Translations under genes and position numbers: made by a program
NCBI GenBank assembly: GCA_038496445.1
Contig: JALMLS010000404.1
Coordinates: 135,470 to 199,469, forward strand
Length of the DNA stretch: 64,000 bases
Direction: 5' to 3'
Source of the DNA: Trichosphaerium sp. ATCC 40318
Taxonomy: Eukaryota; Protista; Tubulinea
The notes under the pieces: model-generated
Told to the model about the DNA's origin: nothing
What the model saw: the letters and a program-made list of their open reading frames with translations, nothing else
Database searches by the model: none
Shown here: in pieces, positions 27,913 to 62,507 of the stretch
Numbering within the stretch: the first letter of the stretch is position 1
Layout: each line of letters starts with the position of its first letter

Positions 27913-28854
27913 TTATTCACATACAATACCAGATGAGAAAAGGAACATATTTCCAATAAGTGCAACGCCATCCCCACGTTCGAAAGAACCACAATTAAGA
28001 AAGGCATTGAAACCAATAATCTTACCTCTCTGTGATGATGATTCAGAATCATTGATAACAACAATAAAAGGGTATTCATTACCTTTAACTTTAACACGTG
28101 CAATCTGCTTTGCTTTATCATTTACTGAACCAAGAGCTATATTATCAACATCACCATAACTTTTTACACCTTGTAGAATAAAGTGATCTGGGTCATCCTT
28201 CATAAAATCATATTCATAGCAGTCCATTTGTGTGCCATCAACATTGTTTTCATCTTTATTCGGTATGATAGGCATATAGCTTCTTGTCCATTCTCCACTT
28301 GGTGTCTCTACAAATGAACAACCTGTAAACACAGCTGATATTACACCTGATCCAGTGTCAACACTTCTACGAAGAAAGTCTCCAAGATACTTTCCTTCTT
28401 CTTCAGCAAACCCATAATTAGAGTCAACAAAAATAGCATCATATTTCTTGTCTAGTATTCCCTTGCCAACATCATTAATATCAAGGTAGTCGCAATTAAC
28501 GCCAAGATCGGCCATCTTGCTAACTATAAGATCTCCTGTATCTCGATTGTTAACGTACAAGTACTTGCCAACCTGTTTTCGTGGTTAGAACGATTGAACA
28601 TGACCTCTAAACAAGCCACGTACAACCAAGCGCTTACAAAGCGTATAATATGGACGTTTAAGACCTAGATCTCGTATACTTGACTCTGAAAACGTAACTG
28701 GGTAACGAGACGCCAGTACTTTTCTCCACAGGGTACGAGAGTGCTCTACAAGGTAATTAAAGAGCCATGATACTCTCTGTAATACAGTCAATTGAGAAGA
28801 GTCAGCATTATCAATAATACACTGCCATATCTCTGGCGGTACGCTGTTTGTCAT
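27913..28854 (-). CDS. F-box protein with a C-terminal alpha/beta (class I GATase/ThuA-like?) domain; one intron
   Basis: VPPEIWQCIID..LQRVSWLF..LWRK. TTG GTT|gtacgt...aacag|GTT GGC joins the two ORFs. The fold assignment is tentative (YDAIFVD, DHFILQGV). Confidence 0.8.
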
Positions 28855-29464: not shown

Positions 29465-30715
29465 TATATATCTTTACCTTCCATCATAAGGGTTAGAAGC
29501 TTAACTATCCTATTTGTTAGTTTGCCATTTGCATCCCATTGTTTGGATCCACCATGCTTTTCACCATCAACCCACATAAACTGATACTTTAGTTGTCCAT
29601 TCTCATGCCATCCTTTGTTTGTTACCATCAAATCACATGGACTGATACATCAGTTGCCCATTTTCATACCACCCTTTACATTGGCCTTGTCGCTTACCAT
29701 CAACCCACATGCACTGATACTTCAGTTGCCCATTTTCATACCATCCTTTACTTATACCATGTTCTTTATCCTCTTTCCACGAGCCCTGATATTGTATTTG
29801 CCCATCATTGTACCAACTTTTGGTTTCACCATGTTGTTTATCCTCAAACCACATTCCCAAAACTTTGAGTTGGCCATTATCATGCCATTCTCTACTTTCA
29901 CCATGTTGTTTACCATCAACCCATATGCCTTGGTCCTCAAATTGTCCATTCTCACGCCATTTGCTATGCTCACCATGCTGTTTACCCTCAACCCACATAC
30001 ACTGATACTTTAGTTGTCCATTCTCATGCCATCCTTTGTCTACACCTTGTTTGTTGCCATCAACCCACATGGACTGATACTTCAGTTGCCCATTTTCATA
30101 CCACCCTTTACATTGGCCTTGTCGCTTACCATCAACCCACATGCACTGACATCTTAGTTGACCATCATTATACCAAATTTTACTTTCACCATGTTGTTTA
30201 CCCTCAACCCACATGACTTGTTCCTCAAGTTGTCCATTCTCATACCAATTTCTGCATTCACCATGTTGTTTACCATCAACCCACATGTACTTATCCTCAA
30301 GTTGTCCATTCTCATACCATCCCTTATCTATACCATGCTTTTCACCATCAACCCACACGCACTGATACTTTAGTTGTCCATTCTCATGCCATCCTTTGTT
30401 TTCACCATGGGTTTTACCTTTAAATTTGCTGCACTGTTGCTGAAGCTTTCCATTTTTATACCATTGCATCCATAGTCCTTGTGGTTGCAACATTTCATCA
30501 AAGTGTGTATTAATTGCTGCTCTCTTTGATAGAGTGTGGAATTTTGTAAATACTTCTACATTGAAAGTACAAATGTACGTTTGAAGCTCACTTGGAATAT
30601 CCAATAATCTCAAAGAATCTGATTTACTGCCCAACTTTTGTTTACGTTTGGAAAGAGACTTTAAAAAGAAAAAAAGTGTTAGTACTACAAAAAGTACACA
30701 AGGTGATCGAAACAC
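29465..30715 (-). CDS. F-box-like + highly homogeneous MORN-variant repeat array; decayed 3' tail, start uncertain
   Basis: LLDIPSELQTYICTF then ~12 units of GxxKGW(Y/H)ENGQLxxQxMWV(D/E)GK. TGG>TGA at 29633 and frameshifted repeats to 29465. No ATG before the F-box; a splice acceptor sits near 30660. Confidence 0.8.
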
Positions 30716-38209: not shown

Positions 38210-40016
38210 ATGGAACCTCAAACACAACAACCAGCACAGGTACGATCCGTACTAGTGTTTCTTAGCGCTAAGTGTATTTGTAGGAAACCGGATACAACGT
38301 CTACGTTACCAACATATCCCCTAAAGCAACAGAAACTACCGTCACAGATTTTTTCAGCTTCTGTGGTAAAATTACAAAGATAGTGTTGTCCAAGTACGTT
38401 ATACTGCGCGAGCGCATGCAATCATGCCTTTCTATAACTCCAAATTACCCGACGGTTTAAGAAATCGGGTAAAACTACCCAAATATACCTACTGGTATCC
38501 CAGGACAAACTATGAGGGTTTTAACCCAACCACAATGCTTTTCCTAAATGTGGCCCTTGAAATTGCCCAAAACCGCGTGAAATGTCTATTTAATCATGTA
38601 TAGGAATGGCGACGAACTACAAAGCGCTGTTGTGACCTTTCAAACTGAAGAAGCTTCTAAAACAGCTCTATTACTTACAAACGCGTTGATAGTTGATCGT
38701 CCAATCACTGTATCCAGTGAAGCTTCAGCAGGTACCGAAAAACAAAAAAAACACATTAAAAAACCTCCAACTAAACAAACGCCCTTAGCGCCAGTCGAAA
38801 CTGAGAAAACAGTCAAAATTGAAGTCATTGGTGATGACATTCAACAAAAAAATTACGACGCTCCTGCTGATCAACGTGTACGCCATTGCGAATTAAATTA
38901 GAGCGCATTGACGCACATTTTAACAAGAAAAAGAAAATTTTTTGTTTTGGCTTTTTTGGGCTTTGTTGGGCTTTTGAGTTCTAACTCCGGTACACAGACA
39001 AAGACGTCTGTTATTGCGTCACTGATAGCTGCTGGGTATAAGCTTGGTAATGACGTCATCGCTAAAGCCAAAAAAACTGATGGTATGAATATCTTGGCTG
39101 TTTACTGTTCATTTCTGATTTTTTTTTGATAGAGGAGTACAGTATCTCTGCTCGCCTTCAACAGGGTGCAGATTCCATAAAAGCAAAGGCAGCTGAAGTT
39201 GATGAAAAACTTGGCGTATCAGCAACTGCTGCCACTTTGGGTAATGCTGTTGTATCCACAGCTCAAGAACTTGATCAGAGATACAAAGTATCTGAGAATG
39301 TAGCGTACGTGTTTTAAAACTCCTTTTTTATTTACCACTGCTACTCGCGTAGTAGGTAACTCTTACATTCGTTGAATGTTGGCGGGCTTTTTCAAATAAA
39401 TTGTTTCTTATATTTTCACTGTAGTGCTACAACTGAGAGTGCCAGACAAGCTGTTTATGCAGGAGCTGCTACTGTTGCAGCACAACCAGGAGTACAAAGT
39501 GGAATTGATACACTTCGCGCTCTTGGTGCAATTGGTTATAGCAAACTGAGCGAGGGTATCAACACAGTAAAAGGTATGAAGAAATTGACGTCTACAAAAC
39601 TTAAATACTGATTTACGTATTAGCCACCGCAGGATTTGACGTAACACCACCTGCACCTCAAGAGGTTCATGACATGGCACCTGCAGACGAGGTAAATTAG
39701 ATAATTTAAAGTTTAAGACACGTAGAGGAAAACTGTCTACATGTTGTTTTTTATTTTTTTCCTCTGTACTGATTGTGCTTACTCAATTTAGGCTGATAAA
39801 GCTGCACCTGTCACACAAGTGAGCGCACCAACTGGTGAAGATGATAAAGCTGCAGCACCTGTTGCAGATGTTGCAGCACCTGCTCAGGTACATGCAGACT
39901 CAGCTGTACCAGCTCAAGCACCAGCACAAGATGTTGCTCCTGTTTCAGCACCTGTAGAAGCAAAGCCTGCTGTCGAAGCTGAGAAAGCCCCAGCTACTGA
40001 TGAACCAAAAGCATAG
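38210..40016 (+). CDS. RRM protein, Vip1/BPA1-like
   Basis: VYVTNISPKATETTVTDFFSFCGKI; AVVTFQTEEASKTALLLTNALIVDRPI; ASLIAAGYKLGNDVIAKAKKTDEEYSIS; Ala/Pro-rich tail. Confidence 0.85.
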
Positions 40017-44195: not shown

Positions 44196-44329
44196 AATTC
44201 ACAAAGTATAAATTACAAGAAATATGGCTTTTCACGCACGTGCGTCTTGAGGCTTAATAAGACGGTTAAGTTGTTATTTAAAGGAGGAAGCTAGTTGGTG
44301 GAGCAAATACCTAAATAATAGTGAGACAG

Positions 44330-45385
44330 ATGTTATTGTCTCGCCGCAAGAATTATTACCCTAGTATTACTGTATGTAATCTACTAGACCTACCAAATGA
44401 TATTCAAAGGTATTTATGCACTTTCAATAAAGAAATATTCATAAAGTTCCATACACTCTCTAAAAAAGCTGCAATCAACACCCATTTTGATGAAAAACTT
44501 GAAACAAAAGGTCTTTGGTTACGTTGGTATCCAAATGGATGTTTACAGAGTCAAACGATGATGCTTGAAGGTAAGAAAAATGGGAAACAGAAAAAATGGC
44601 ACGTGAATGGACAACTTTTGTTTGAAACAAATTATGTTGATGATAAGAGACATGGTATGTATAAGAGTTGGCATGAAGGAGGTCAAGTCAATGCACAATG
44701 TAATTTTGAGGATGGTAAAGAGAGTGGAGAGGGCAAACAATGGCATCCGAATGGTCAAATCAAGATACATACATTCTATGTTGATGGTAAACAAAATGGT
44801 GAGCACTGTGAGTATTATGAAAATGGGCAATTAGAACTAAAGATAACATATGTGAATGATAAGAAGCATGGTGAACAGAAAGAATGGTACAAGAATGGAG
44901 AGTTGGTTTTTCAATCAATGTTCAAGAATGGCTTGAAAGATGGTGATTGTACAAGATATTATGAAAATGGACAAATAGGCGAGTTTGAGGTGTTTGTTGA
45001 AGGTATTAAGCATGGTGAATCCAAAGAGTGGTACGAGAATGGAATATTGGCTTCTCAAGCTATTTATGTAAATGGAGAAAAAAATGGCGAGTTCAGAGGG
45101 TGGTATGAGGGTGGACAACTCCACATGAAATGCATGTGTGTTAATGACAAGTTACATGGAGAATTTAAGGAATGGTACATGAACGGACAACTAGGGTACC
45201 AGTGCACATATATTGAAGGTCAGGCACAAGGTGAACGCCTGAAATGGTATGATAATGGGCAACTACGATCGACAACAATGTATGTTAATAATGAAAAGCA
45301 TGGTGAGCACAAAGAATGGCATGAAGATGGACATTTCAAGCTTCAACAACATTATGTCCATGGTACATTAAAGGAAGACCCATAA
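44330..45385 (+). CDS. F-box-like + MORN-variant repeat protein (paralogue of 25295-26359)
   Basis: Collinear with the arm-B gene, roughly 90% identical by eye; first ATG at 44330. Confidence 0.9.
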   Translation: MLLSRRKNYYPSITVCNLLDLPNDIQRYLCTFNKEIFIKFHTLSKKAAINTHFDEKLETKGLWLRWYPNGCLQSQTMMLEGKKNGKQKKWHVNGQLLFETNYVDDKRHGMYKSWHEGGQVNAQCNFEDGKESGEGKQWHPNGQIKIHTFYVDGKQNGEHCEYYENGQLELKITYVNDKKHGEQKEWYKNGELVFQSMFKNGLKDGDCTRYYENGQIGEFEVFVEGIKHGESKEWYENGILASQAIYVNGEKNGEFRGWYEGGQLHMKCMCVNDKLHGEFKEWYMNGQLGYQCTYIEGQAQGERLKWYDNGQLRSTTMYVNNEKHGEHKEWHEDGHFKLQQHYVHGTLKEDP

Positions 45386-45879: not shown

Positions 45880-46884
45880 TTGATCCTTCTTTCAGTCAAA
45901 CATGGTATCAAACTGTGTTTTATTGGCGTCAGTATTACAAACAGCGTACCGCCAGAGATATGGCAGTGTATTATTGATAATGCTGACTCTTCTCAATTGA
46001 CTGTATTACAGAGAGTATCATGGCTCTTTAATTACCTTGTAGAGCACTCTCATACCCTGTGGAGAAAAGTACTGGCGTCTCGTTACCCAGTTACGTTTTC
46101 AGAGTCAAGTATACGAGATCTAGGTCTTAAACGTCCATATTATACGCTTTGTAAGCGCTTGGTTGTACGTGGCTTGTTTAGAGGTCATGTTTAATCGTTC
46201 TAACCACGAAAACAGGTTGGCAAGTACTTGTACGTTAACAATCGTGAGCGGGGAGATCGAGTGGTTGACAGGATGACTGAGCTTGGCTTTAATTGTGAGT
46301 ATCTTGATATTACTGGTGTTGGCAAGGGAATATTAGACAAGTATGATGCTATTGTTGTTGAGTCTAATTATGGGTTTGCTGAAGAAGGAAAGTATCTTGG
46401 AGACTTTCTTCGTAGAAGTGTTGACACTGGATCAGGTGTAATATCAGCTGTGTTTACAGGTTGTTCATTTGTAGAGACACCAAGTGGAGAATGGACAAGA
46501 AGGCATATGCCTATCATACCTAATAAAGATGAAAATAACAAGGATGGAACACAATTATACTGCTTTGAATATGATTTTATTAAGGATGACCCAGATCACT
46601 TTATTCTACAAGGTGTAAAGAGTTTTGGTGATATTGAGTTCATTGCTCTTGGTTCAGTAAATGATAGAGCAAAGCAGATTGCACGTGTTAAAGTTGAAGG
46701 TAATGAATACCCTTTTATTGTTGTTATCAATGATTCTGAATCATCATCCACTTCATTGCCTTCACATAGAGGTAAAATTGTTGGCTTAAATGCGTTTCTT
46801 TCAAATTATTTTTTCAGTCGTGGGAATGGTGCTGCACTTATTGGAAATATGTTTCTTTTCTCATCTGGTATTGTATGTGAATAA
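45880..46884 (+). CDS. F-box + alpha/beta domain protein (paralogue of 27913-28854); start uncertain
   Basis: Near-identical F-box exon and the same intron. The paralogue's ATG is ATT here, so the start may be a short upstream exon (ATG near 45857). Confidence 0.75.
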
Positions 46885-51773: not shown

Positions 51774-54271
51774 TCACGTTTTCGTGTAATGCTTAACATC
51801 TAGGTAGTGTCCTGAAAATTTTACCAGCTTGCCTTCATAGTTATAACCATATCTGTTAACAGATACAGCATCCTTAAGATATTGTAATTTACCAAACTCT
51901 ACCTTACATTGTTTTTTATCTTTAGAAAAAACAACAGACTTAACAACTTCCTCAGGATTCCACTAAATTAAACGTGTCAACAATCTTCTCAATGGTTACA
52001 AGTATATAACAACAATATTTGCTTTAAAAAAGAGCCATATTAATGGCAAAAAACCCAAAAGTAGCCACAAGGAACGTGGGTCCAAGAATTTAAAAAAAAG
52101 ACTTAAAAAAAAAAGAAACATACTGTTGTTTTGGTTTCACCGTAATCTTTCTTCTTAAATATGTAGCACCAAAGGTTAGCTATGTCCTCTTTCTTAAGAG
52201 TCAAATACCATGATAAAGAAGAGAAGTCCTGAATCATCAAAAATGGAGGATCTGAAGGGTACGGCAAAGCATGCCTTGAACGACATTTAACTACAAAAAA
52301 CATAAGAAAAAGAAGGGAAAGTGTGATTGCAAGCGTAAACAACAATATTTTTACTTGAACAGTTCAAATTCTTTGTTTCCCCAACTGCACCTTGAAAATA
52401 TTGTTTCATAAGTGAAATAAAACTCAAGGTCTTTTTATGGGCAGGAAAAAAAGAAGTTTTTTTTTGGGTTTTTTGCTGTTGTACCTCTCGAAAATCCTTG
52501 GCCAGTAAAGAATGATATTTCCCTGTCATAATTACGGAGTGGGTCTTGGTGAAAGTATATAAGAGGTTTTTTGGGTAAGAAAACAAGCAATGAACAAGGT
52601 AGGTTACATCTAGCTGCAGCTGCTATCTTGTGATGTCCATCAATCAGAAAATTTGAAAGAACAGTATGTATGCTTTGCTTTAACAAATAGTTCTTTGTTG
52701 GGTACGGTGTTCCACGACGATCAATCATACCAAAGGACATAGCTGTAGGTATTTCACCTTTTTTAAGCTTATTAACATAGTAATTAACACGTGATTCATC
52801 AAGAGATGACATTTTTTGAAATGGATTGATTGTGTTAACCCTAAACTCTTTTTCGTCTTGTTGATAAAAGCAACGATAGTAAGAAGGACAACCAATGCTG
52901 ATTTCTTTCTTTGATTCTGTAGAGAACTCACACCAGTCCTAGAAAGAAAAGTGAGTACACTACACCCTGTTGAGATGTATTAAAACCAAACAAAATAAAA
53001 GTAAAGGTGTCAACACTTCCAGAAGCCTCTACGCCTCCCTCAGTATTGATTATCAAATAAGAAGTCTAGCTAGCAGATATGCTAGCTTAAAGCTATACTT
53101 CAAGGTAGTAAAGACTGCTTCTTTACATGAATCTAGCTAGGCGATTTCTAAAGTCACTCAAATAACGTTTTCGACTCAATTACAAAGTTCAAGTATTGTT
53201 GAACTGTTTGTCGGCAAAAAAAGGTTGTTGAAAGGAGAATATCAACCCACGTACCCAATATTTAGCCCATTCGTTTGACCAGTAATCTTTTTCATCGAAA
53301 TCAGTCGCTTCTTTGTCGATTGTTTTTAATTTGTTTTCTACTAACTCAGGTCTAACAAAAATTTGCATAACGTCATACCTAAAGCAACATATTTGAGTAC
53401 AATCAATTGTAAGAGTATATCATGAACTTACGATCCATCAGGAAAAATAGCACTCAAAGTACTGAGTAGGTTGTCATCTTCCAGACTAAAACAATCTCCG
53501 TGATTGGCATTTAAAGCACTTGAAATACTTTCAACAGAAACATCTGCTGTAGCCACATGTGACCACCAAAATGCTCCAGTTTGAGAATTGGATCCCAAAT
53601 AGACTGTTTTCTTGCCATCAACCTTTATTGATGTATATCTATCTTCTTCACGCAAGCCCCTACTGAATTCTTTGTGAGTTTTTTTTTTTCAGAATAAAAG
53701 AAGAATTTGTTTTTTTCATTTTGATATCACGTGGTTGTAGTAAAACTTACACCATTCTTGGTTGTCCTCTTTCTTCGGGTGTTTCAAAAGAAATCTTTTT
53801 TAAGTGTGGTTCACTTTTAACAATATAATTGCGTCTGCAGCGTCCACCTAAACAACGACATAAACTTGTTTTTCCGTTCATTCGGGCGAGTTGTAGAAAT
53901 GACAACTGGCTGAGGTTTTTGTCTATTTATGGTTCTAATCGCGTACTTTGTGTATGTGTCTTGTATAAATGTTGGTATGAAAAGCCTTGAGGTGGTTTAA
54001 GGTATTTTTGCTTTTCAGCTATTGTTTCAAAACAAAACCCGCTGCATTTACTAATAAAGTGTTAGTCTGGGCGATAAGAGGATAAATAAGAGTAAAATAA
54101 CTTAGTTTTTCTATAAATGGTAGTTACGTACGTTTTCCACAACCAATTTGAGCTACCAACCTTTTTCCAGCGCTTACAGACACTTTGACATGAAAGTAAA
54201 CATTTCAACTCTACATGTCCAAACAATACACTTAAAACAGCGTCAACATGAAAAGGATGCGTGGGTTCCAT
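51774..54271 (-). CDS. F-box + ParB/Srx-like motif protein (paralogue of 19494-22003)
   Basis: Near-identical exons; slightly different C-terminus. Confidence 0.8.
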
Positions 54272-54457
54272 TCCCACAGACCAATTATTTGATTAAATGG
54301 CTTGTTAAGGTGTTTAAACGGTTAAGTGAAACTTCTGATTTTTCTTTGTAGATCTTATGTCGTAGGAATGCAAGATCACAAAGTAAACCTTGAAATACAA
54401 GTACTCCGCGTTTGAGAGTAGAAAGTTCAAGACCAAAATAAAATAGCTGTCACATTG

Positions 54458-55393
54458 ATGGCAACGAAACGTATCACGTGCGTTGATACATTAAACACAG
54501 AAGTCACAGACTTGTTTTCACTTCCAATCGAGATACTTTTAAATATTATCATTAGCAACGACCTAACATGGCAAGATTTGGCGTCGTTACAACAATCAAA
54601 CCATCATCTATGTCAAATAATACGAAATGAGTCAGCTTACATTTATCGACATTTGTACCATCAGAAATGGGGTCTTGATGGTGCAAAACTAGAGTCTACT
54701 ATCCATAAACGTATCGCAGGTCATTTAACACAACAACAGTTGACTGGGCACATAAAGGAGATAAAGACTTTGTATAACCTCGATGCAGTCACGTGGAAAG
54801 AAAAATACCTCAACAAACTTGTTCCAAACATCATCTTGGAGTTGAGTTGTAACAAAAAGAATGTTCACAAAGGACAAACAGTAACATTCACACTTACACT
54901 CAAGAATATTGGTAAAACGCCTGAGACAGTTTGCCTTGGTTGTGGATCTAGTCCTAATATATCTAGTGATATTGAAAGTGGTAGGTCTATTTATATTTGG
55001 AAGCCTCTTGTACAGGATCTCGGTGGCTTTCTGAACAATTCCATAAACAAACTTCATGTATCTAGCGAGTGGAATGTACATGACTATAACCTCATAGTGG
55101 AACCAGGAGATAGACATTCATTCAAAATTCCATTACTGTTAGACGCATTAAAGCCAGTACTATGGTTTGGAAGAAGAATGCCTCTACTACCTTCTGATAG
55201 GTTGTCTCTTCAGGGCAGCGTCTACCAAGTAATTGTTTGTGATGAAACACCAAATGTATTTCCTCTTCAAGTATTTGTCACGATCAATACTCTCAAGGAA
55301 TCATGTGAAGGTCTTTTAAATATTATACATGGACATTGTTCAACTGTTACAAGCAATATTGTAGATCTTACAATGTACAGGACACCTCAGTAA
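54458..55393 (+). CDS. Intronless F-box protein with an Ig-like beta-sandwich C-terminal domain, tandem copy 1
   Basis: LFSLPIEILLNII..LTWQDLASLQQSN; KGQTVTFTLTLKNIG and VEPGD motifs. Confidence 0.85.
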   Translation: MATKRITCVDTLNTEVTDLFSLPIEILLNIIISNDLTWQDLASLQQSNHHLCQIIRNESAYIYRHLYHQKWGLDGAKLESTIHKRIAGHLTQQQLTGHIKEIKTLYNLDAVTWKEKYLNKLVPNIILELSCNKKNVHKGQTVTFTLTLKNIGKTPETVCLGCGSSPNISSDIESGRSIYIWKPLVQDLGGFLNNSINKLHVSSEWNVHDYNLIVEPGDRHSFKIPLLLDALKPVLWFGRRMPLLPSDRLSLQGSVYQVIVCDETPNVFPLQVFVTINTLKESCEGLLNIIHGHCSTVTSNIVDLTMYRTPQ

Positions 55394-56050
55394 AGCTCTT
55401 ATAATTATAGAATTAGTACTTGAAAAGAAAAACAAAAAACCTTTTGATTGTTGCTTTTGCTGCAAGCATGACAACATGTTCACTTGTTTTCTTTCCAAAA
55501 AATCGACTACCAAAACGCCATGTATGATTTAACATTGGTGGATACAATCACAACATTGGCAACACAATTTGTTAGCAATAAGAATAAAAAATGAATACCA
55601 AATGTCAATGTTTAACATTGAATTACAATTCATGTTTTTGGCTATACGTACTTTCACTTCTTGTTCCTCTCCACGGCAACGCTCTAGTATCTACCTCTGT
55701 TTTAAGTTCACAAAGTATGTATTGGGTTTTCAAATCTGGTTGAAATACGACAACTATTGTACAATGATCATTATTTCTTTTGGCGATTTTCTGGCCAAAT
55801 AATCATTTGGGTGTTTTGAAACAAATTGTGCCCTACCTGAGGCTACCCAGTTACTTACATTAGCATTGATGTATTTTGAATAAAAAACTACACGTCTGTG
55901 TTGTGGGAACTTCTTTCTTCGAATTTTCTGATTGTATTTTCTTCTAATCAAAGGAGACGAAGTAGAAAAGCTACGAACCCAACATAATGAGAATAAGTAC
56001 GCGTTCTTGTGTAAACAAATTGACCAAAATAATGTACCACAAGTCCCATA

Positions 56051-56947
56051 ATGACAGCGAAACGTATCACGTGCGTCGATATATTAAGCACAGAAGTCAC
56101 AGACTTGTTTTCACTTCCAATCGAGATACTTTTAAATATTATCATTAGCAACGACCTAACATGGCAAGATTTGGCGTCGTTACAACAATCAAACCATCAT
56201 CTGTGTCAAATAATACGAAATGAGTCAGATTACATTTATCGACATTTGTACCATCAGAAATGGGGTCCTGATGGTGAAGAACTAGAGTCTGCTATCCATA
56301 AATGTATCACTAAAGAATTAAAACGTCTTAGTCAATTAGGTGTTTTAATACGTACTGCGACTGAGTATAATCTTGATGCAGTCACGTGGAAAGAAAAGTA
56401 TCTCAACAAACTTGTTCCAAACATCATCTTGGAGTTGAGTTGTGACAAGAAACATGTTCACAAAGGACAGACAGTAACATTTACAGTAACACTTCAAAAC
56501 ATTGGTAAAACAGAAGAGAGATTATACCTCGGTACTGGACCAAATAAATATAGCATTGAAGGGGGTAAGGCTATCTATGTTTGGAAACCTTGTATGTACA
56601 TGGAGTCTGGATACCTCAACAATTTCAAGGAAAGATACGATTATTCATACCCGCGGGAGAGAAAAGTTAATATTACAGTGAATCCAGGAGATAGGCATAC
56701 ATATAAGCTGACGTTACTTTTTGACATTAACAGACGACACGTTCCTCGTTATCTATCTCTTCAAGGTAGAAAATATCTAGTGTTTGTTGCCTGTGATGAA
56801 TCACCAAATGTGTTTCCTCTTCAAGTATTCGTCAAACTCAATACTAATAAGGAGGTATATGATACTCCTCTTACAAGTGTTCGTGGACAATGTTCAGTTG
56901 CCACAAGCAATATTGTAAATCTTACAATGTACAAGACACCTCAATAA
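56051..56947 (+). CDS. Intronless F-box protein with an Ig-like domain, tandem copy 2
   Basis: First ~75 aa almost identical to copy 1; same framework motifs. Confidence 0.85.
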   Translation: MTAKRITCVDILSTEVTDLFSLPIEILLNIIISNDLTWQDLASLQQSNHHLCQIIRNESDYIYRHLYHQKWGPDGEELESAIHKCITKELKRLSQLGVLIRTATEYNLDAVTWKEKYLNKLVPNIILELSCDKKHVHKGQTVTFTVTLQNIGKTEERLYLGTGPNKYSIEGGKAIYVWKPCMYMESGYLNNFKERYDYSYPRERKVNITVNPGDRHTYKLTLLFDINRRHVPRYLSLQGRKYLVFVACDESPNVFPLQVFVKLNTNKEVYDTPLTSVRGQCSVATSNIVNLTMYKTPQ

Positions 56948-57222
56948 ATCTCCTATAATCTTCACTTACAAGAAACAAGTAAAATCAATTTGATAAAAAA
57001 CCCAATGTGCCGTCTGATAGAGATTTGGCATCCATATCACAAACTTGAGCTACACAAGTGACTTCATACTGCTGACAACAGACGTCTGGAATAAATTGCT
57101 AATGATCAGAAGGGAGATTCGTGAAAACAACAAATTACCCATCAACAGCCTATAACAGGGAACGGCCGTTCTAAGTAATAAAACACTGCAGCTGCAAAAT
57201 TTTGTCTTTTGATTCAAATAAT

Positions 57223-60200
57223 TTATTGTCCAAGAAGAAAGCGTATTGAACTTTCAAGCAATGGTACTAATATAGGTGCTTGTGAGCGTGTACATAATTT
57301 ACAAACATTTGTCTTTGGTGTAAATGCTATTTCAATAAGGAATACCAAGTTATTATGTGTAGCAGCAGAGAAGTAAAGAACGACCTTTCAAAAAAAACAC
57401 AATTAGTATTATTCAAAGAAATATGTCAAAAAAAACCATGGTTGAGTTGATTCACATGTGTTGATAACATGGATTTGATATATTTAAAAAATAACAAAGG
57501 TATTTCAATTTTAGAATTTTTTTGTTGTGAACGTGGAGAAAAAGGAAGAAAAAATCGAGAAAAAAAAAGTTAAACCAAAAGAAACCAAAAAATCATCTCT
57601 AATGAGGGTGTGATCCCAGAAACAATCATATAATTTGCTGGTAATAATGTGTTCTTTGAAATGGTTTATAAATTTTTAATGTAACACGCAAAGTGGTGTT
57701 ATTATGAAACGATTTTTGAGAAGGAGTAAAAATATGAAAAAATAAAAAGCATACCTGGCCTTCTTTTTTACTTGATGCCACAAAGAACATGTTATGCGAA
57801 TTCATTCTGTTTTTAATAGCATCTTTATTAGAAGCTATTATCAAAGGAATATCAGCATACTTTTCCTCTCCACTAACTTGCCACAACTCGCGATAAGCCT
57901 ATTAAAAATAATTAGCAAGACAAGGACAAAAAATAGGCTACACTGTCAGCATAAGAAACACCTCGACATTCAAAATAACCCCAAAAGTTTGAGGTTAATT
58001 AGTCTACTTTAGATGTATTGTACACAAAAGCGTTGATACCAACAATGTAAAAAGTTTTGGCTACCAATCACGATCGTTTATGTTTCATTGAAAAAGAAAA
58101 AACCAAAAGGTATTGACGTACTTGTTTAGTAAGACCTCTCCCTTCTACAAACAAAACATGGATTGGAACAGGTGCCTTGAAGTAATAAAGACCAGTATTA
58201 TTCCTTATAGCTATCTCAACAACGTTTGAAACACCATCAGTTGCCTGTCCATCAAGCGTAATAGGAAGTGAAACAACCATAGTTTGGCCAGGCATTATTT
58301 GAACGACTTGCATAGGCGCACCAGGTACCATAGCGAATCTACACATAAAATAAGTCATACAACGCTCAGGTACATAATAAAAGAACGCTATGAAAGTAAT
58401 ATTATACGCACGTGTTTTTGTTGAACTGAATTTGAAATTCACGAAGTGGTTGTTGTGATTTATTTGTAAGCCTCATATCAAAGAAGATACGTTCTCTTCG
58501 ATTAAAAGATGCCAGGACTTCTAAGCCACCTCCAGATTCAGGTTTGAGTACATTTATAGGTGGGCATGTTATAACATCTCTAGAAGAAACAGTAGGAGAA
58601 TTTGGAGCACTTGCTGATGATCTATTCGACCTCGCTGAAGATCTGTTCGATTTTGACCTTTTCGGACTTGAAGGCGTCTTCTTTCCGCTTGAACGTGCAG
58701 AGAGTAATACAGAAGCACGTTTCTTTAATGGTGCATGACCTGTATGTTCCACAAAAGCCTCTGGTGGTTTGTGATAGATACTAGCTAATGTACCAATCTC
58801 AGAAATGAGTTCTTCTAGAACAGATTCTTCAATACGAGTTGAAGCATCAGAAATTAATGGTTTCTTCGAAAGAACGATTGCTTTCGCACGTTCTGGGTCT
58901 AAACAATATCATTAATATATGTACATAGCCTTGGGACATATTATGGTTCTCAAAGAGACAAGAAGATCAACACATACCTTTAGAGAGAAGTCTCCAATAA
59001 ATAAAACCTCGATCGCGAAGATCTGGGTCTTGAGAGACTGTAGCGGCATTGAGTACTTCTTGTACGAGTTTAGCATGTTCTGGTTTACGCAAGAATAACT
59101 TAACGATGCTTGTGAGTAGTTGAAGCTGTACTATAGAAGCAGCTTCAGTGAATCCTTCAAAAAATACTTCAAGTAATTCTCCTGCATTATCAATACGTTC
59201 TCCATACTCTCCAATGATCCAGATCATAGCTGCTTTTGCTTCTGGTTCATCCAATGCTTCTAGGTTATCGCATAGAACGGTGACTATACTCTCATACTTG
59301 TTAGGATACTTACGGAAGATATCCTAAGGCAAAACGTCAGATCTTCACAAAAAAATTTGATGTATGAACTTCGAGTCGCTTTTACACTAGCTGTATGCTT
59401 GCGTTTGACTCTTTCTTAGTTTTTTAAATTGTGTACGTACCTTAATGACAATAATGGATTCTTGAACAACGTATGATATCTTAGTTTTGATGAGATCAAG
59501 TAAAACATGAACCGATTTTTCAGCAGCAGATTTTAACTTGATAGCACAGCGACCAATAGCACGAACAGCCTTGCGAGCAAACTGAGCATCTATTTCTAAA
59601 GCATACTTCTTAAGTTCCACAAGAACCTAATAAAGACCATGAGTGCATACAACATCACCAACGCAGCAAAATCCGAGAAAAGCGAAAACAAAAAAAAAGC
59701 ACAAAAGCGCTTTCAATCATCGCAAGTCGGCAAAGGTTTAAGCTTTCAGCTTCTACCCTGTAGCTTTGGATTTGAAGCACAACAGAAATGTATTAAACTG
59801 AATGTTAGACGTACTTGATCAATATTATGAGGAGTAACAAGCATTATAATTAACTCTAGTTTTTCCATCTTAACATAAACTGGATCATTGTATTTACAAT
59901 AAAACACTTTAACGTCATCATGTCCTTGTAATAGCTTTGGTGTCTTTTGTAGAATTAAATTAACATTACGTAGAGCAACATATTGAAGCTCAGGATGCTT
60001 TGAGTTTAGAAGAGTGACTACAATGGAAGAAATGTTAGAAAGTCAAAAAAAAAAGAAACTTTTTTCTTGGAATGGGTTTTTTTTTTTGAGGTTTCTGCGA
60101 CTTACCAAGAGGTGGTGCTACTTTCTTTAGTAGTTTTTCAGATTGTTCTTTGTCAAATAGAACAATATATCTCATAACAATCTTAACAGTTGCAAGAACA

Positions 60201-61726: not shown

Positions 61727-62507
61727 CCTTTTTTTGACGCAATAGCAAAAGTCAGGCTGTTGGAATTTGCCTGTCAAATGTTTTAATTAGATTCGACCAA
61801 ATCAAGGTTTGATGGCGATGTTTTTGTGATAACGGGACGCCTAGTTTTTAGAGATGGATTGTTTAATATTTATCAACCAAGAATTGTTGTGAATTCGTAA
61901 TAGCAATGCGCACGTGATTATAAATACCGTAGCTGTCATTATTTTTAGTGCTTTTTTATTTACAGGAGCGCTTATCTCTGAACTTGTAGTGAAAAGAAAG
62001 GCTGGCTTGAAGGAACTATATCAACATGAAACGGATGCAAATTCTCAAGCTGTAGCGTGTGAAAGAACTAAGTGCAAAAGAGCAACATTGAGATGCGTCA
62101 CTAAAGGAGTCAAATATATGAACCACAAAATATGAGGCGAAAAGGCAAGAACAAGCTCTCCTCCATATGAAAGAATATAGGCTGAAGAAAAGCTTAATCA
62201 TTCCATAGGCACAGAGGTAAAGAAGAATCCGCCAGAGTTGAAAAGGAAGAAAAGTAACCAACGTAGTGGTCGCCCATGTCTATCTCGACGAGACTTAATG
62301 TGATAATGAAGCTACCCTACCCAATCAGCGAAACATTGCGTTTGTTCTTGTAGACCTAAATATAAATCATAAACGGTTTCTAAAGTTGCTGGATACAGCC
62401 AACACTGAAACTGAAGCCTAAATGAAAACAAAAACGAACAGTTTAGGTGAACTTTTTTTTTATTATTAATACACTTAGTTTTTATGGTCTTCTCCTTTGA
62501 GCTTCTC

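Follow-up and report, generated by a model that had tools for sequence, protein, structure and literature searches.

We analysed a stretch of 64,000 nucleotides of the Trichosphaerium sp. ATCC 40318 genome (assembly GCA_038496445.1, contig JALMLS010000404.1, positions 135,470 to 199,469; hereafter the window), which is the final stretch of its contig, designated C115. Two tandem genes in the window, A and B, belong to a species-restricted family with at least 45 intact copies, in which the framework of the protein is under purifying selection and omega (the ratio of nonsynonymous to synonymous divergence, dN/dS) exceeds 1 in loops. In the encoded protein, a variable helical linker joins an N-terminal three-helix module, probably an F-box, to an Ig-like beta-sandwich (E-set, DUF11/CARDB-like) at the C-terminus. 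The identical 5' end of A and B is a gene-conversion tract and is not explained by constraint alone. With moderate confidence, we interpret the family as an expanded, species-restricted set of substrate receptors of the Skp1-cullin-F-box (SCF) type with loops under diversifying selection.

Both genes are uninterrupted open reading frames (ORFs) on the plus strand, as are all of their parts described below, and the gap between them is 657 bp. Gene A (window positions 54458..55393) is an intronless coding sequence (CDS) of 311 aa plus stop with its ATG at 54458, found in the ORF list and as a family member, and gene B (56051..56947), also taken from the ORF list, is an intronless CDS of 298 aa plus stop with its ATG at 56051. 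The proteins are 63% identical with 15 gap positions (BLASTP), and the flanks of the two genes, upstream and downstream alike, are not alignable with each other. The structure was modeled with AlphaFold2 on an alignment of 40 paralogues (model m6d962e4fb6e9; mean pLDDT 83, pTM 0.77). In the model, residues 1-15 are disordered and are followed by helices 24-34, 38-57 and 59-71, a long helix 75-95 and then a loop; the C-terminal part consists of a short helix (113-121) and a beta-sandwich (125-294) with pLDDT mostly 87-98 in the sandwich blocks. Accordingly numbered, the F-box-like three-helix region comprises residues 19-72 in both proteins (54512..54673 in A and 56105..56266 in B) and was delimited by sub-threshold PF12937 matches and predicted helices, together with an ESM Atlas search in the case of B. 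The variable helical linker of B (residues 73-105, 56267..56365; A counterpart 54674-54772) leads to a framework block containing the helix, the first strands and a DUF11/CARDB-like motif (residues 106-153, 56366..56509; A counterpart 54773-54916). The beta-sandwich domain, recognized from the model and from fold searches, spans residues 122-298 of B (56414..56944; A counterpart 54821-55390).

The Ig-like label given to the C-terminal part in the first-pass annotation is fair: the model is a two-sheet sandwich with significant structural matches, the best of which are E-set/Ig-like domains. The best VIA matches of the sandwich were Spo0M (Z 9.2) and the AsaP1 N-terminal domain (Z 9.1), with 5cl2 and 2x3a among the best (up to 9.2); transglutaminase C-terminal, macroglobulin MG, arrestin-like, ApaG and CARDB domains followed at Z 6.6-8.3, no single match of the whole set standing out, and Foldseek returned 45 matches at E ≤ 1e-3. 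At the level of sequence profiles, no full-domain DUF11/CARDB match was obtained: PF01345 scored 14-15 bits against a cut-off of 24.6 and covered profile positions 5-32 only, and a weak DUF11 repeat match (TIGR01451, 17.5-17.9 bits versus 24) was the only NCBIfam yield. The framework blocks noticed at first reading, including PNVFPLQVFV and TSNIV.LTMY.TPQ, are conserved in A and B and largely so in the 40 paralogues, in which W113, K114, N150, G152, P252, V254, F255 and S286 are among the invariant or near-invariant residues. As had also been noticed, indels and most replacements fall in the segments between these blocks.

A key question is whether the variable segments are diversified by selection or are simply old. 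Between A and B, Nei-Gojobori estimates by region gave a synonymous divergence (dS) of 0.03, a nonsynonymous divergence (dN) of 0.008 and an omega of 0.25 for F-box codons 19-72; the corresponding values were 0.60, 0.63 and 1.05 for linker codons 73-105, 0.59, 0.036 and 0.06 for framework codons 106-153, and 0.70, 0.45 and 0.65 for the remaining codons 154-298. At the sites later called selected, the proportions of synonymous and nonsynonymous differences in this pair (pS 0.80 and pN 0.63) are both saturated; therefore, the family was used for the selection tests. Synonymous divergence equally high to that of replacements, named in advance as the outcome that would speak against hypervariable loops, is found in the A-B pair, an old duplication with dS 0.6-0.7, an omega of 0.65 over codons 154-298 and silent sites that are saturated in the variable segments. 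Thus, the proposed pattern of framework and hypervariable loops is not demonstrable from the A-B pair, whereas it holds at the family level, where sites with omega > 1 cluster in a few, mostly loop, segments and are confirmed when close pairs are left out of the tree (see below).

Close-pair estimates were made with ten phylogenetically independent close pairs, partitioned by the secondary structure of the model. Omega was 0.26 (95% confidence interval, CI, 0.13-0.53) in the F-box, 1.03 (CI 0.64-1.79) in the linker, 0.57 (CI 0.39-0.86) in the sandwich strands and 1.21 (CI 0.88-1.71) in the sandwich loops. Site models were then fitted to the C-terminal part (194 codons in 40 sequences), using our own code (GY94, F3x4, pruning likelihood) with a fixed topology, iqtree codon branch lengths and one scale factor. 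Under M0, the omega of the C-terminal part was 0.47. The likelihood-ratio test (LRT) gave 238.9 for M2a versus M1a, with ~14% of sites at an omega of ~2.8, as well as 211.9 for M8 versus M7 and 152.9 for M8 versus M8a. The LRT was 112.7 with gap-free columns alone and, with segment-specific trees, 27.9 for residues 106-190 and 149.4 for residues 191-298, while four simulations of the M1a null, run on the tree used for the real data, yielded values of 1.3, 0.2, 4.4 and 0.3. In the N-terminal part, a positively selected class (LRT 44.7) was located in linker residues 85-100 (P > 0.95).

The sites with P > 0.95 in the C-terminal part fall into four hypervariable segments (B numbering), and 11 of the 13 called sites that can be placed on the B model lie in predicted loops (Fisher p = 0.008). 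Segment 1 (residues 181-187, 56591..56611; A counterpart 55007-55027) contains residue 186, with 185 and 187 at P > 0.8. Segment 2 (residues 192-204, 56624..56662; A counterpart 55040-55081) contains 194, 197-200 and 203-204, which were recovered with the segment-specific tree; it had been named as variable from the A-B comparison and is the strongest hypervariable segment of the protein. The other segment named in that comparison (B residues 157-172) belongs to the neutral class and is unconstrained, not positively selected. Segment 3, a length-variable loop (residues 226-234, 56726..56752; A counterpart 55145-55201), contains 227, 229 and 230 plus insertion columns, seven columns of an insertion absent from B being called in all; residues 227-230 were recovered in gap-free columns too. 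Segment 4 (residues 266-278, 56846..56884; A counterpart 55292-55330) contains 266 and 271, and close-pair replacements are concentrated there.

One additional piece of evidence was provided by cross-validation, in which each of nine close pairs was removed from the tree, the posteriors were recomputed, and the substitutions within the removed pair were then counted. At the sites called selected, omega was 2.43 (CI 1.35-6.5), with 74 replacement versus 9 silent changes (binomial p = 0.013) and a dS of 0.081; in the neutral class, omega was 0.83 (dS 0.114), and in the purifying class, it was 0.37 (dS 0.067). The called sites thus show no increase in silent divergence, which makes it unlikely that tracts imported from distant paralogues account for the excess of replacements.

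These results bear on the possibility that A and B arose simply by an old tandem duplication, that a conversion tract covers their 5' end and that the loops drift neutrally, the omega values above 1 arising from alignment error, recombination or multi-nucleotide mutation. We consider this unlikely. It is in agreement with the dS of 0.6-0.7 and the omega of 0.65 over codons 154-298 in the A-B pair, with the silent-site saturation of the variable segments (pS 0.80), with their richness in indels, with the two to three adjacent nucleotide changes in each of B codons 181-186, with the mosaic histories found within the family and with a pooled loop omega of 1.21 whose CI includes 1. However, the LRT remained high when only gap-free columns were used (112.7) or when each segment had its own tree (27.9 and 149.4), the simulated null data did not exceed 4.4, and the excluded close pairs, for which the alignment is unambiguous, gave an omega of 2.43 with a dS (0.081) no higher than elsewhere. 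Of the alternatives that we weighed, neutral drift is the one most directly contradicted, by the leave-pair-out test.

The 5' end of the two genes has a different history from that of the loops. There are 12 differences between the two genes in the initial 255 nt of the CDS, only 6 of them within nt 33-240; the near-identity noted at first reading is real. It extends to silent sites: codons 12-80 contain one synonymous difference in 43.3 sites, whereas the rest of the CDS has 64.9 in 142 (Fisher p = 1e-8). The grouping of sites could be examined with the help of a second copy of this locus. The C215 interval 67165-90060 (inverted; loci L052-L055) is colinear with window positions 64000-38605 at ~96% identity and carries a second pair, A2 and B2, and the contrast between a low F-box dS (0.03) and 0.6-0.7 elsewhere is common to both locus copies. 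In the four-way alignment of A, B, A2 and B2, sites grouping by gene number 53 in the 120 nt upstream and 26 in CDS nt 256-420, whereas in CDS nt 33-240, none group by gene and four group by locus (A = B, A2 = B2). The conversion tract that follows from the site grouping and the synonymous count is ~208 nt long (CDS nt 33-240; 54490..54697 in A and 56083..56290 in B). It spans the F-box-like region and ends ~8 codons beyond its helices, at the onset of the variable linker. The four locus-grouped sites indicate that conversion between A and B postdates the split of the locus copies or is recurrent.

Thus, the test for gene conversion suggested along with the first-pass annotation turned out positive, and the F-box described there as invariant owes its near-identity mainly to this tract, while across the family the median dS of the region is 0.96. 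Two other explanations of the identical 5' end were ruled out: codon-level constraint, because pS in the tract is at least 0.20 (median 0.43) against 38 other paralogues, and family-wide homogenization of the F-box, given the above median over 861 pairs. A silent-site-identical F-box combined with a diverged C-terminal domain occurs only in the four A/B pairings across the two loci and in one linked mosaic pair, L017 (C21:390415-391332) and L023 (C21:372146-373054). In the latter, dS is low in the F-box (0.07) and the framework (0.03) but reaches 0.67 in the linker and 0.31 over the remaining sandwich, which suggests that this pair underwent two separate conversion tracts.

Another question concerns the nature of the second locus copy. 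The end of C115 (from window position 38605 onward) and the end of C215 overlap dovetail-fashion, with stretches of 100% identity (e.g., 57535-58734) and two indels of ~300 bp (~55400-55757 and ~62155-62452). The overlap probably represents an uncollapsed second haplotype, the alternative being a recent inverted duplication. Over 10.8 kb, identity between C115 and C215 is mostly 96-100%, but exactly where the sandwich of B is encoded (56508-56948), it is only 83-90%; this part contains the most divergent windows of the region. The comparison of B with B2 shows 92 nucleotide differences and 60 replacements in 298 residues, a loop omega of 1.77 and a dS of 0.126; codons 181-186 of B carry two to three nucleotide changes each relative to the C215 copy. 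Between A and A2, there is no replacement beyond approximately residue 140, and dS is 0.03. B and B2 are mutually closest in the assembly (84% at the nucleotide level). Conversion from an assembled paralogue as the origin of this divergence peak was unsupported, the longest donor-like runs being 8 sites of family-consensus states.

Uncollapsed haplotypes produce just such a dovetail overlap of contig ends, so B and B2 may be alleles. If so, B would be unusually polymorphic and a candidate recognition locus. A more specific proposal, which we put forward only tentatively and hold to be rather unlikely, is that B and B2 are alleles of a hyperpolymorphic recognition locus under balancing selection, which would give this multinucleate amoeba an intracellular repertoire for immune or self/non-self recognition based on ubiquitin ligases, the docking module being kept constant by conversion.

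To place A and B in the genome as a whole, we turned to the assembly (70.3 Mb, 642 contigs, ~36% GC). A six-frame search yielded 85 matches, and 50 loci gave 45 distinct intact ORFs, 42 of which are at least 275 aa long. Thirteen matches lie on C115 alone; clusters occur on C115, C215, C40, C87 and C18, and tandem or inverted pairs on C20, C18, C19, C40 and C87. Several matches are fragmentary or stop-bearing, which indicates that some copies are decaying. That the intact members are functional, not decaying, is indicated by the framework omega of 0.06 between A and B and by the 53-57% of sites at an omega of ~0.17-0.20. Two near-identical members on separate contigs, L006 (C76:18430-19359) and L007 (C343:16034-16963), each with one in-frame TAG in the match, are probably another uncollapsed haplotype pair.

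Outside the genome, a single full-length relative, P0001, emerged when 5.8 billion proteins were searched by words and 1.84 billion representatives with a profile of the C-terminal domain. It is an MMETSP transcript that is 100% identical over 333 aa to the genome paralogue L032 (C7:627435-628421), which means that one or more members of the family are transcribed as a complete ORF without introns. P0001 matches the C-terminal-domain profile at E 4e-86 over profile positions 1-209 of 211. The remaining profile matches are giant prokaryotic repeat proteins aligned over only ~18-60 of the profile, and those that were scanned are DUF11/CARDB/DUF7507/DUF7927 proteins. No relative of the family was found in IMG/VR viral contigs.

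The distribution of relatives also bears on a foreign origin, from a giant virus or another source, or on a selfish element, whereby intronless F-box-like genes would have spread in the genome and would subvert host ubiquitination. Such an origin appears very improbable to us. A and B are indeed intronless amid an intron-rich genome, in which the neighboring adaptin gene is in many exons, the family is multicopy and clustered, and by sequence the sandwich resembles only prokaryotic DUF11/CARDB repeats. Moreover, F-box and MORN are the commonest domains among the putative giant-virus transfers in the genome paper (PMC10521059). On the other hand, the IMG/VR contigs contain no relative, the only full-length relative among the 1.84 billion representatives is the amoeba's own transcript, and the GC content of the A/B locus resembles that of the surrounding DNA.

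The assignment of the N-terminal module is more delicate. PF12937 matches both A and B with 17 bits (E 0.005) over profile positions 3-46 of 47, and at E ≤ 0.01 it matches 18 of 40 members over nearly the whole profile (best E 5e-4). The core motif L-F-S-L-P-I-E-I-L-L is present, and the N-terminal position of the module with a separate sandwich after it corresponds to the layout of F-box proteins. All 40 members have P23 and E25, nearly all have I30, L41 and L44, and the motif has Q-Q-S-N-H where V-C/S-K-x-W is usual. A language-model feature search of the ESM Atlas, which serves as a lead only, gave F-box clusters for 10 of the 10 best family-bearing matches, with a top score of 0.92. The genome itself has a very large F-box complement, with 1809 first-look PF12937 candidates; 147 of the 150 that were scored had E ≤ 1e-5, all of them above the curated cut-off. 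We call the module F-box-like and its membership among F-box proteins probable.

In the interpretation that we favor, an SCF-type ubiquitin ligase would use the A/B proteins as interchangeable substrate receptors. Skp1 would be the docking partner of the conserved N-terminus, and a few sandwich loops, perhaps together with the linker, would form a target-binding surface under recurrent diversifying selection. The targets may be fast-changing proteins, for example from viruses, bacteria or other amoebae, with which the family would keep pace. Within the tandem pair, the ~208-bp conversion tract would keep the docking module identical and leave the recognition domain free to diverge.

Several points weigh against this interpretation. 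With regard to selection, the pooled sandwich-loop omega of 1.21 is not significantly greater than 1, and the site models were run with our own code on fixed trees with one global scale; site-model tests can also be inflated by conversion between paralogues and by multi-nucleotide changes. With regard to expression, only one family member was found in the public transcriptome. With regard to the F-box, none of the 40 members examined reached the Pfam gathering score (24.3 bits), so that neither PF00646 nor PF12937 is matched above threshold; a profile search of PDB sequences yielded no F-box protein; the N-terminal model (pLDDT 77) had no Foldseek match at E ≤ 0.001 and a best VIA Z of 4.4, to a homeodomain, small helical domains being poorly resolved in this way; and an hhalign comparison with a single canonical F-box of the window gave nothing. 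The F-box named in the first-pass annotation thus finds weak motif and profile support, but not a Pfam match above threshold or an F-box in the PDB, fold or hhalign searches.

An alternative is that the module is a different conserved helical partner-binding domain and that the proteins are cytosolic Ig-like binding proteins with no link to ubiquitination. The sub-threshold score of every Pfam F-box match, the three structure and profile tests without an F-box (PDB profile, Foldseek and VIA) and the Q-Q-S-N-H motif in place of V-C/S-K-x-W all fit such a view. Nevertheless, the matches cover almost all 47 profile positions and start at the canonical L-P-x-E-I-L with its invariant P23 and E25, all ten of the best family-bearing Atlas matches are F-box clusters, the three-helix layout and the N-terminal position suit an F-box, and isolated F-boxes without Skp1 often model poorly. 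We therefore regard a non-F-box module as improbable and retain the reading as putative SCF-type receptors.

The family displays the pattern of adaptive adaptors: a large lineage-specific expansion with tandem clusters, a docking domain under purifying selection, and recognition sites with omega > 1. In PMC8120010, which cites Thomas 2006, the F-box adaptors of Caenorhabditis elegans are described as having an F-box under purifying selection and a substrate domain under positive selection, and the same evolutionary logic is described in nematode and plant F-box and BTB adaptor families. The Caenorhabditis FTH/FBA2 and plant F-box families are, like the A/B family, large and lineage-specific and have grown by tandem and inverted duplication; their N-terminal F-box is likewise conserved under purifying selection, and tracking of foreign or fast-evolving proteins has been proposed. 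The A/B family differs from them in its recognition domain, an Ig-like sandwich of the DUF11/CARDB-like kind for which no homology to FTH, FBA, Kelch or LRR domains could be detected, as well as in its amoebozoan host, in an F-box too divergent for the Pfam threshold, and in a docking module that is kept identical in the tandem pair by gene conversion. What is new here is the host lineage, the type of recognition domain and a conversion tract with sharp boundaries; the pattern itself was known already from nematode and plant ubiquitin-ligase adaptors.

Two further groups of proteins resemble A and B in part. FBXO2/FBXO6 (Fbs) and FBXO3 are animal F-box proteins with beta-sandwich substrate domains (FBA, ApaG), and their genes are single-copy and conserved, not hypervariable multigene families. 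They share with A and B the order of F-box, linker and single sandwich, which in animals is substrate-binding, and ApaG is among the structural matches (Z 6.7); however, they are not homologous in sequence, and many unrelated sandwiches match the structure at least as well. The DUF11/CARDB/DUF7507 repeats of bacterial and archaeal surface proteins have in common with A and B the motif …G-x-T-V-T-F-T-L-T-L-x-N-x-G… in the first two strands, and the CARDB structure 3idu matches the A/B sandwich with Z 6.6. DUF11/CARDB proteins are secreted arrays of many repeats, whereas in A and B a single copy is cytosolic and joined to an F-box-like module.

In nematodes and plants, F-box families that have expanded and whose recognition domains are positively selected have been regarded as possible repertoires of intracellular defense. 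The A/B family would be an independent amoebozoan case with a different, previously unassigned Ig-like recognition domain, which suggests that the strategy arose repeatedly. With ~300 aa, no introns and a few defined hypervariable loops, the system is compact, and its target specificity should be mappable. The conversion tract that ends at the edge of the docking module is also a clean case of mosaic concerted evolution, in which the shared interface is homogenized and the recognition part is diversified.

Some other features of the window were recorded. The neighboring genes of A and B are intron-rich. On the minus strand, 180 bp upstream of A, positions 54062-54277 contain a canonical F-box exon (PF12937, E 3.6e-7, above threshold), which belongs to a different, apparently multi-exon F-box gene. 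Also on the minus strand, positions 58970-59254 and 59390-59620 are adaptin exons (Adaptin_N, E 1e-21 and 6e-11) with short introns as in ordinary genes, and both are 100% identical between C115 and C215. Finally, two inverted ORFs of ~355 aa (29633-30715 on the minus strand and 44321-45385 on the plus strand) encode an F-box-looking N-terminal motif (LLD-I/L-P-x-x-x-Q) followed by MORN-like repeats; each of them is flanked by a paralogous ORF of ~215 aa (27913-28560 and 46228-46884), and together they constitute an inverted segmental duplication within the window.

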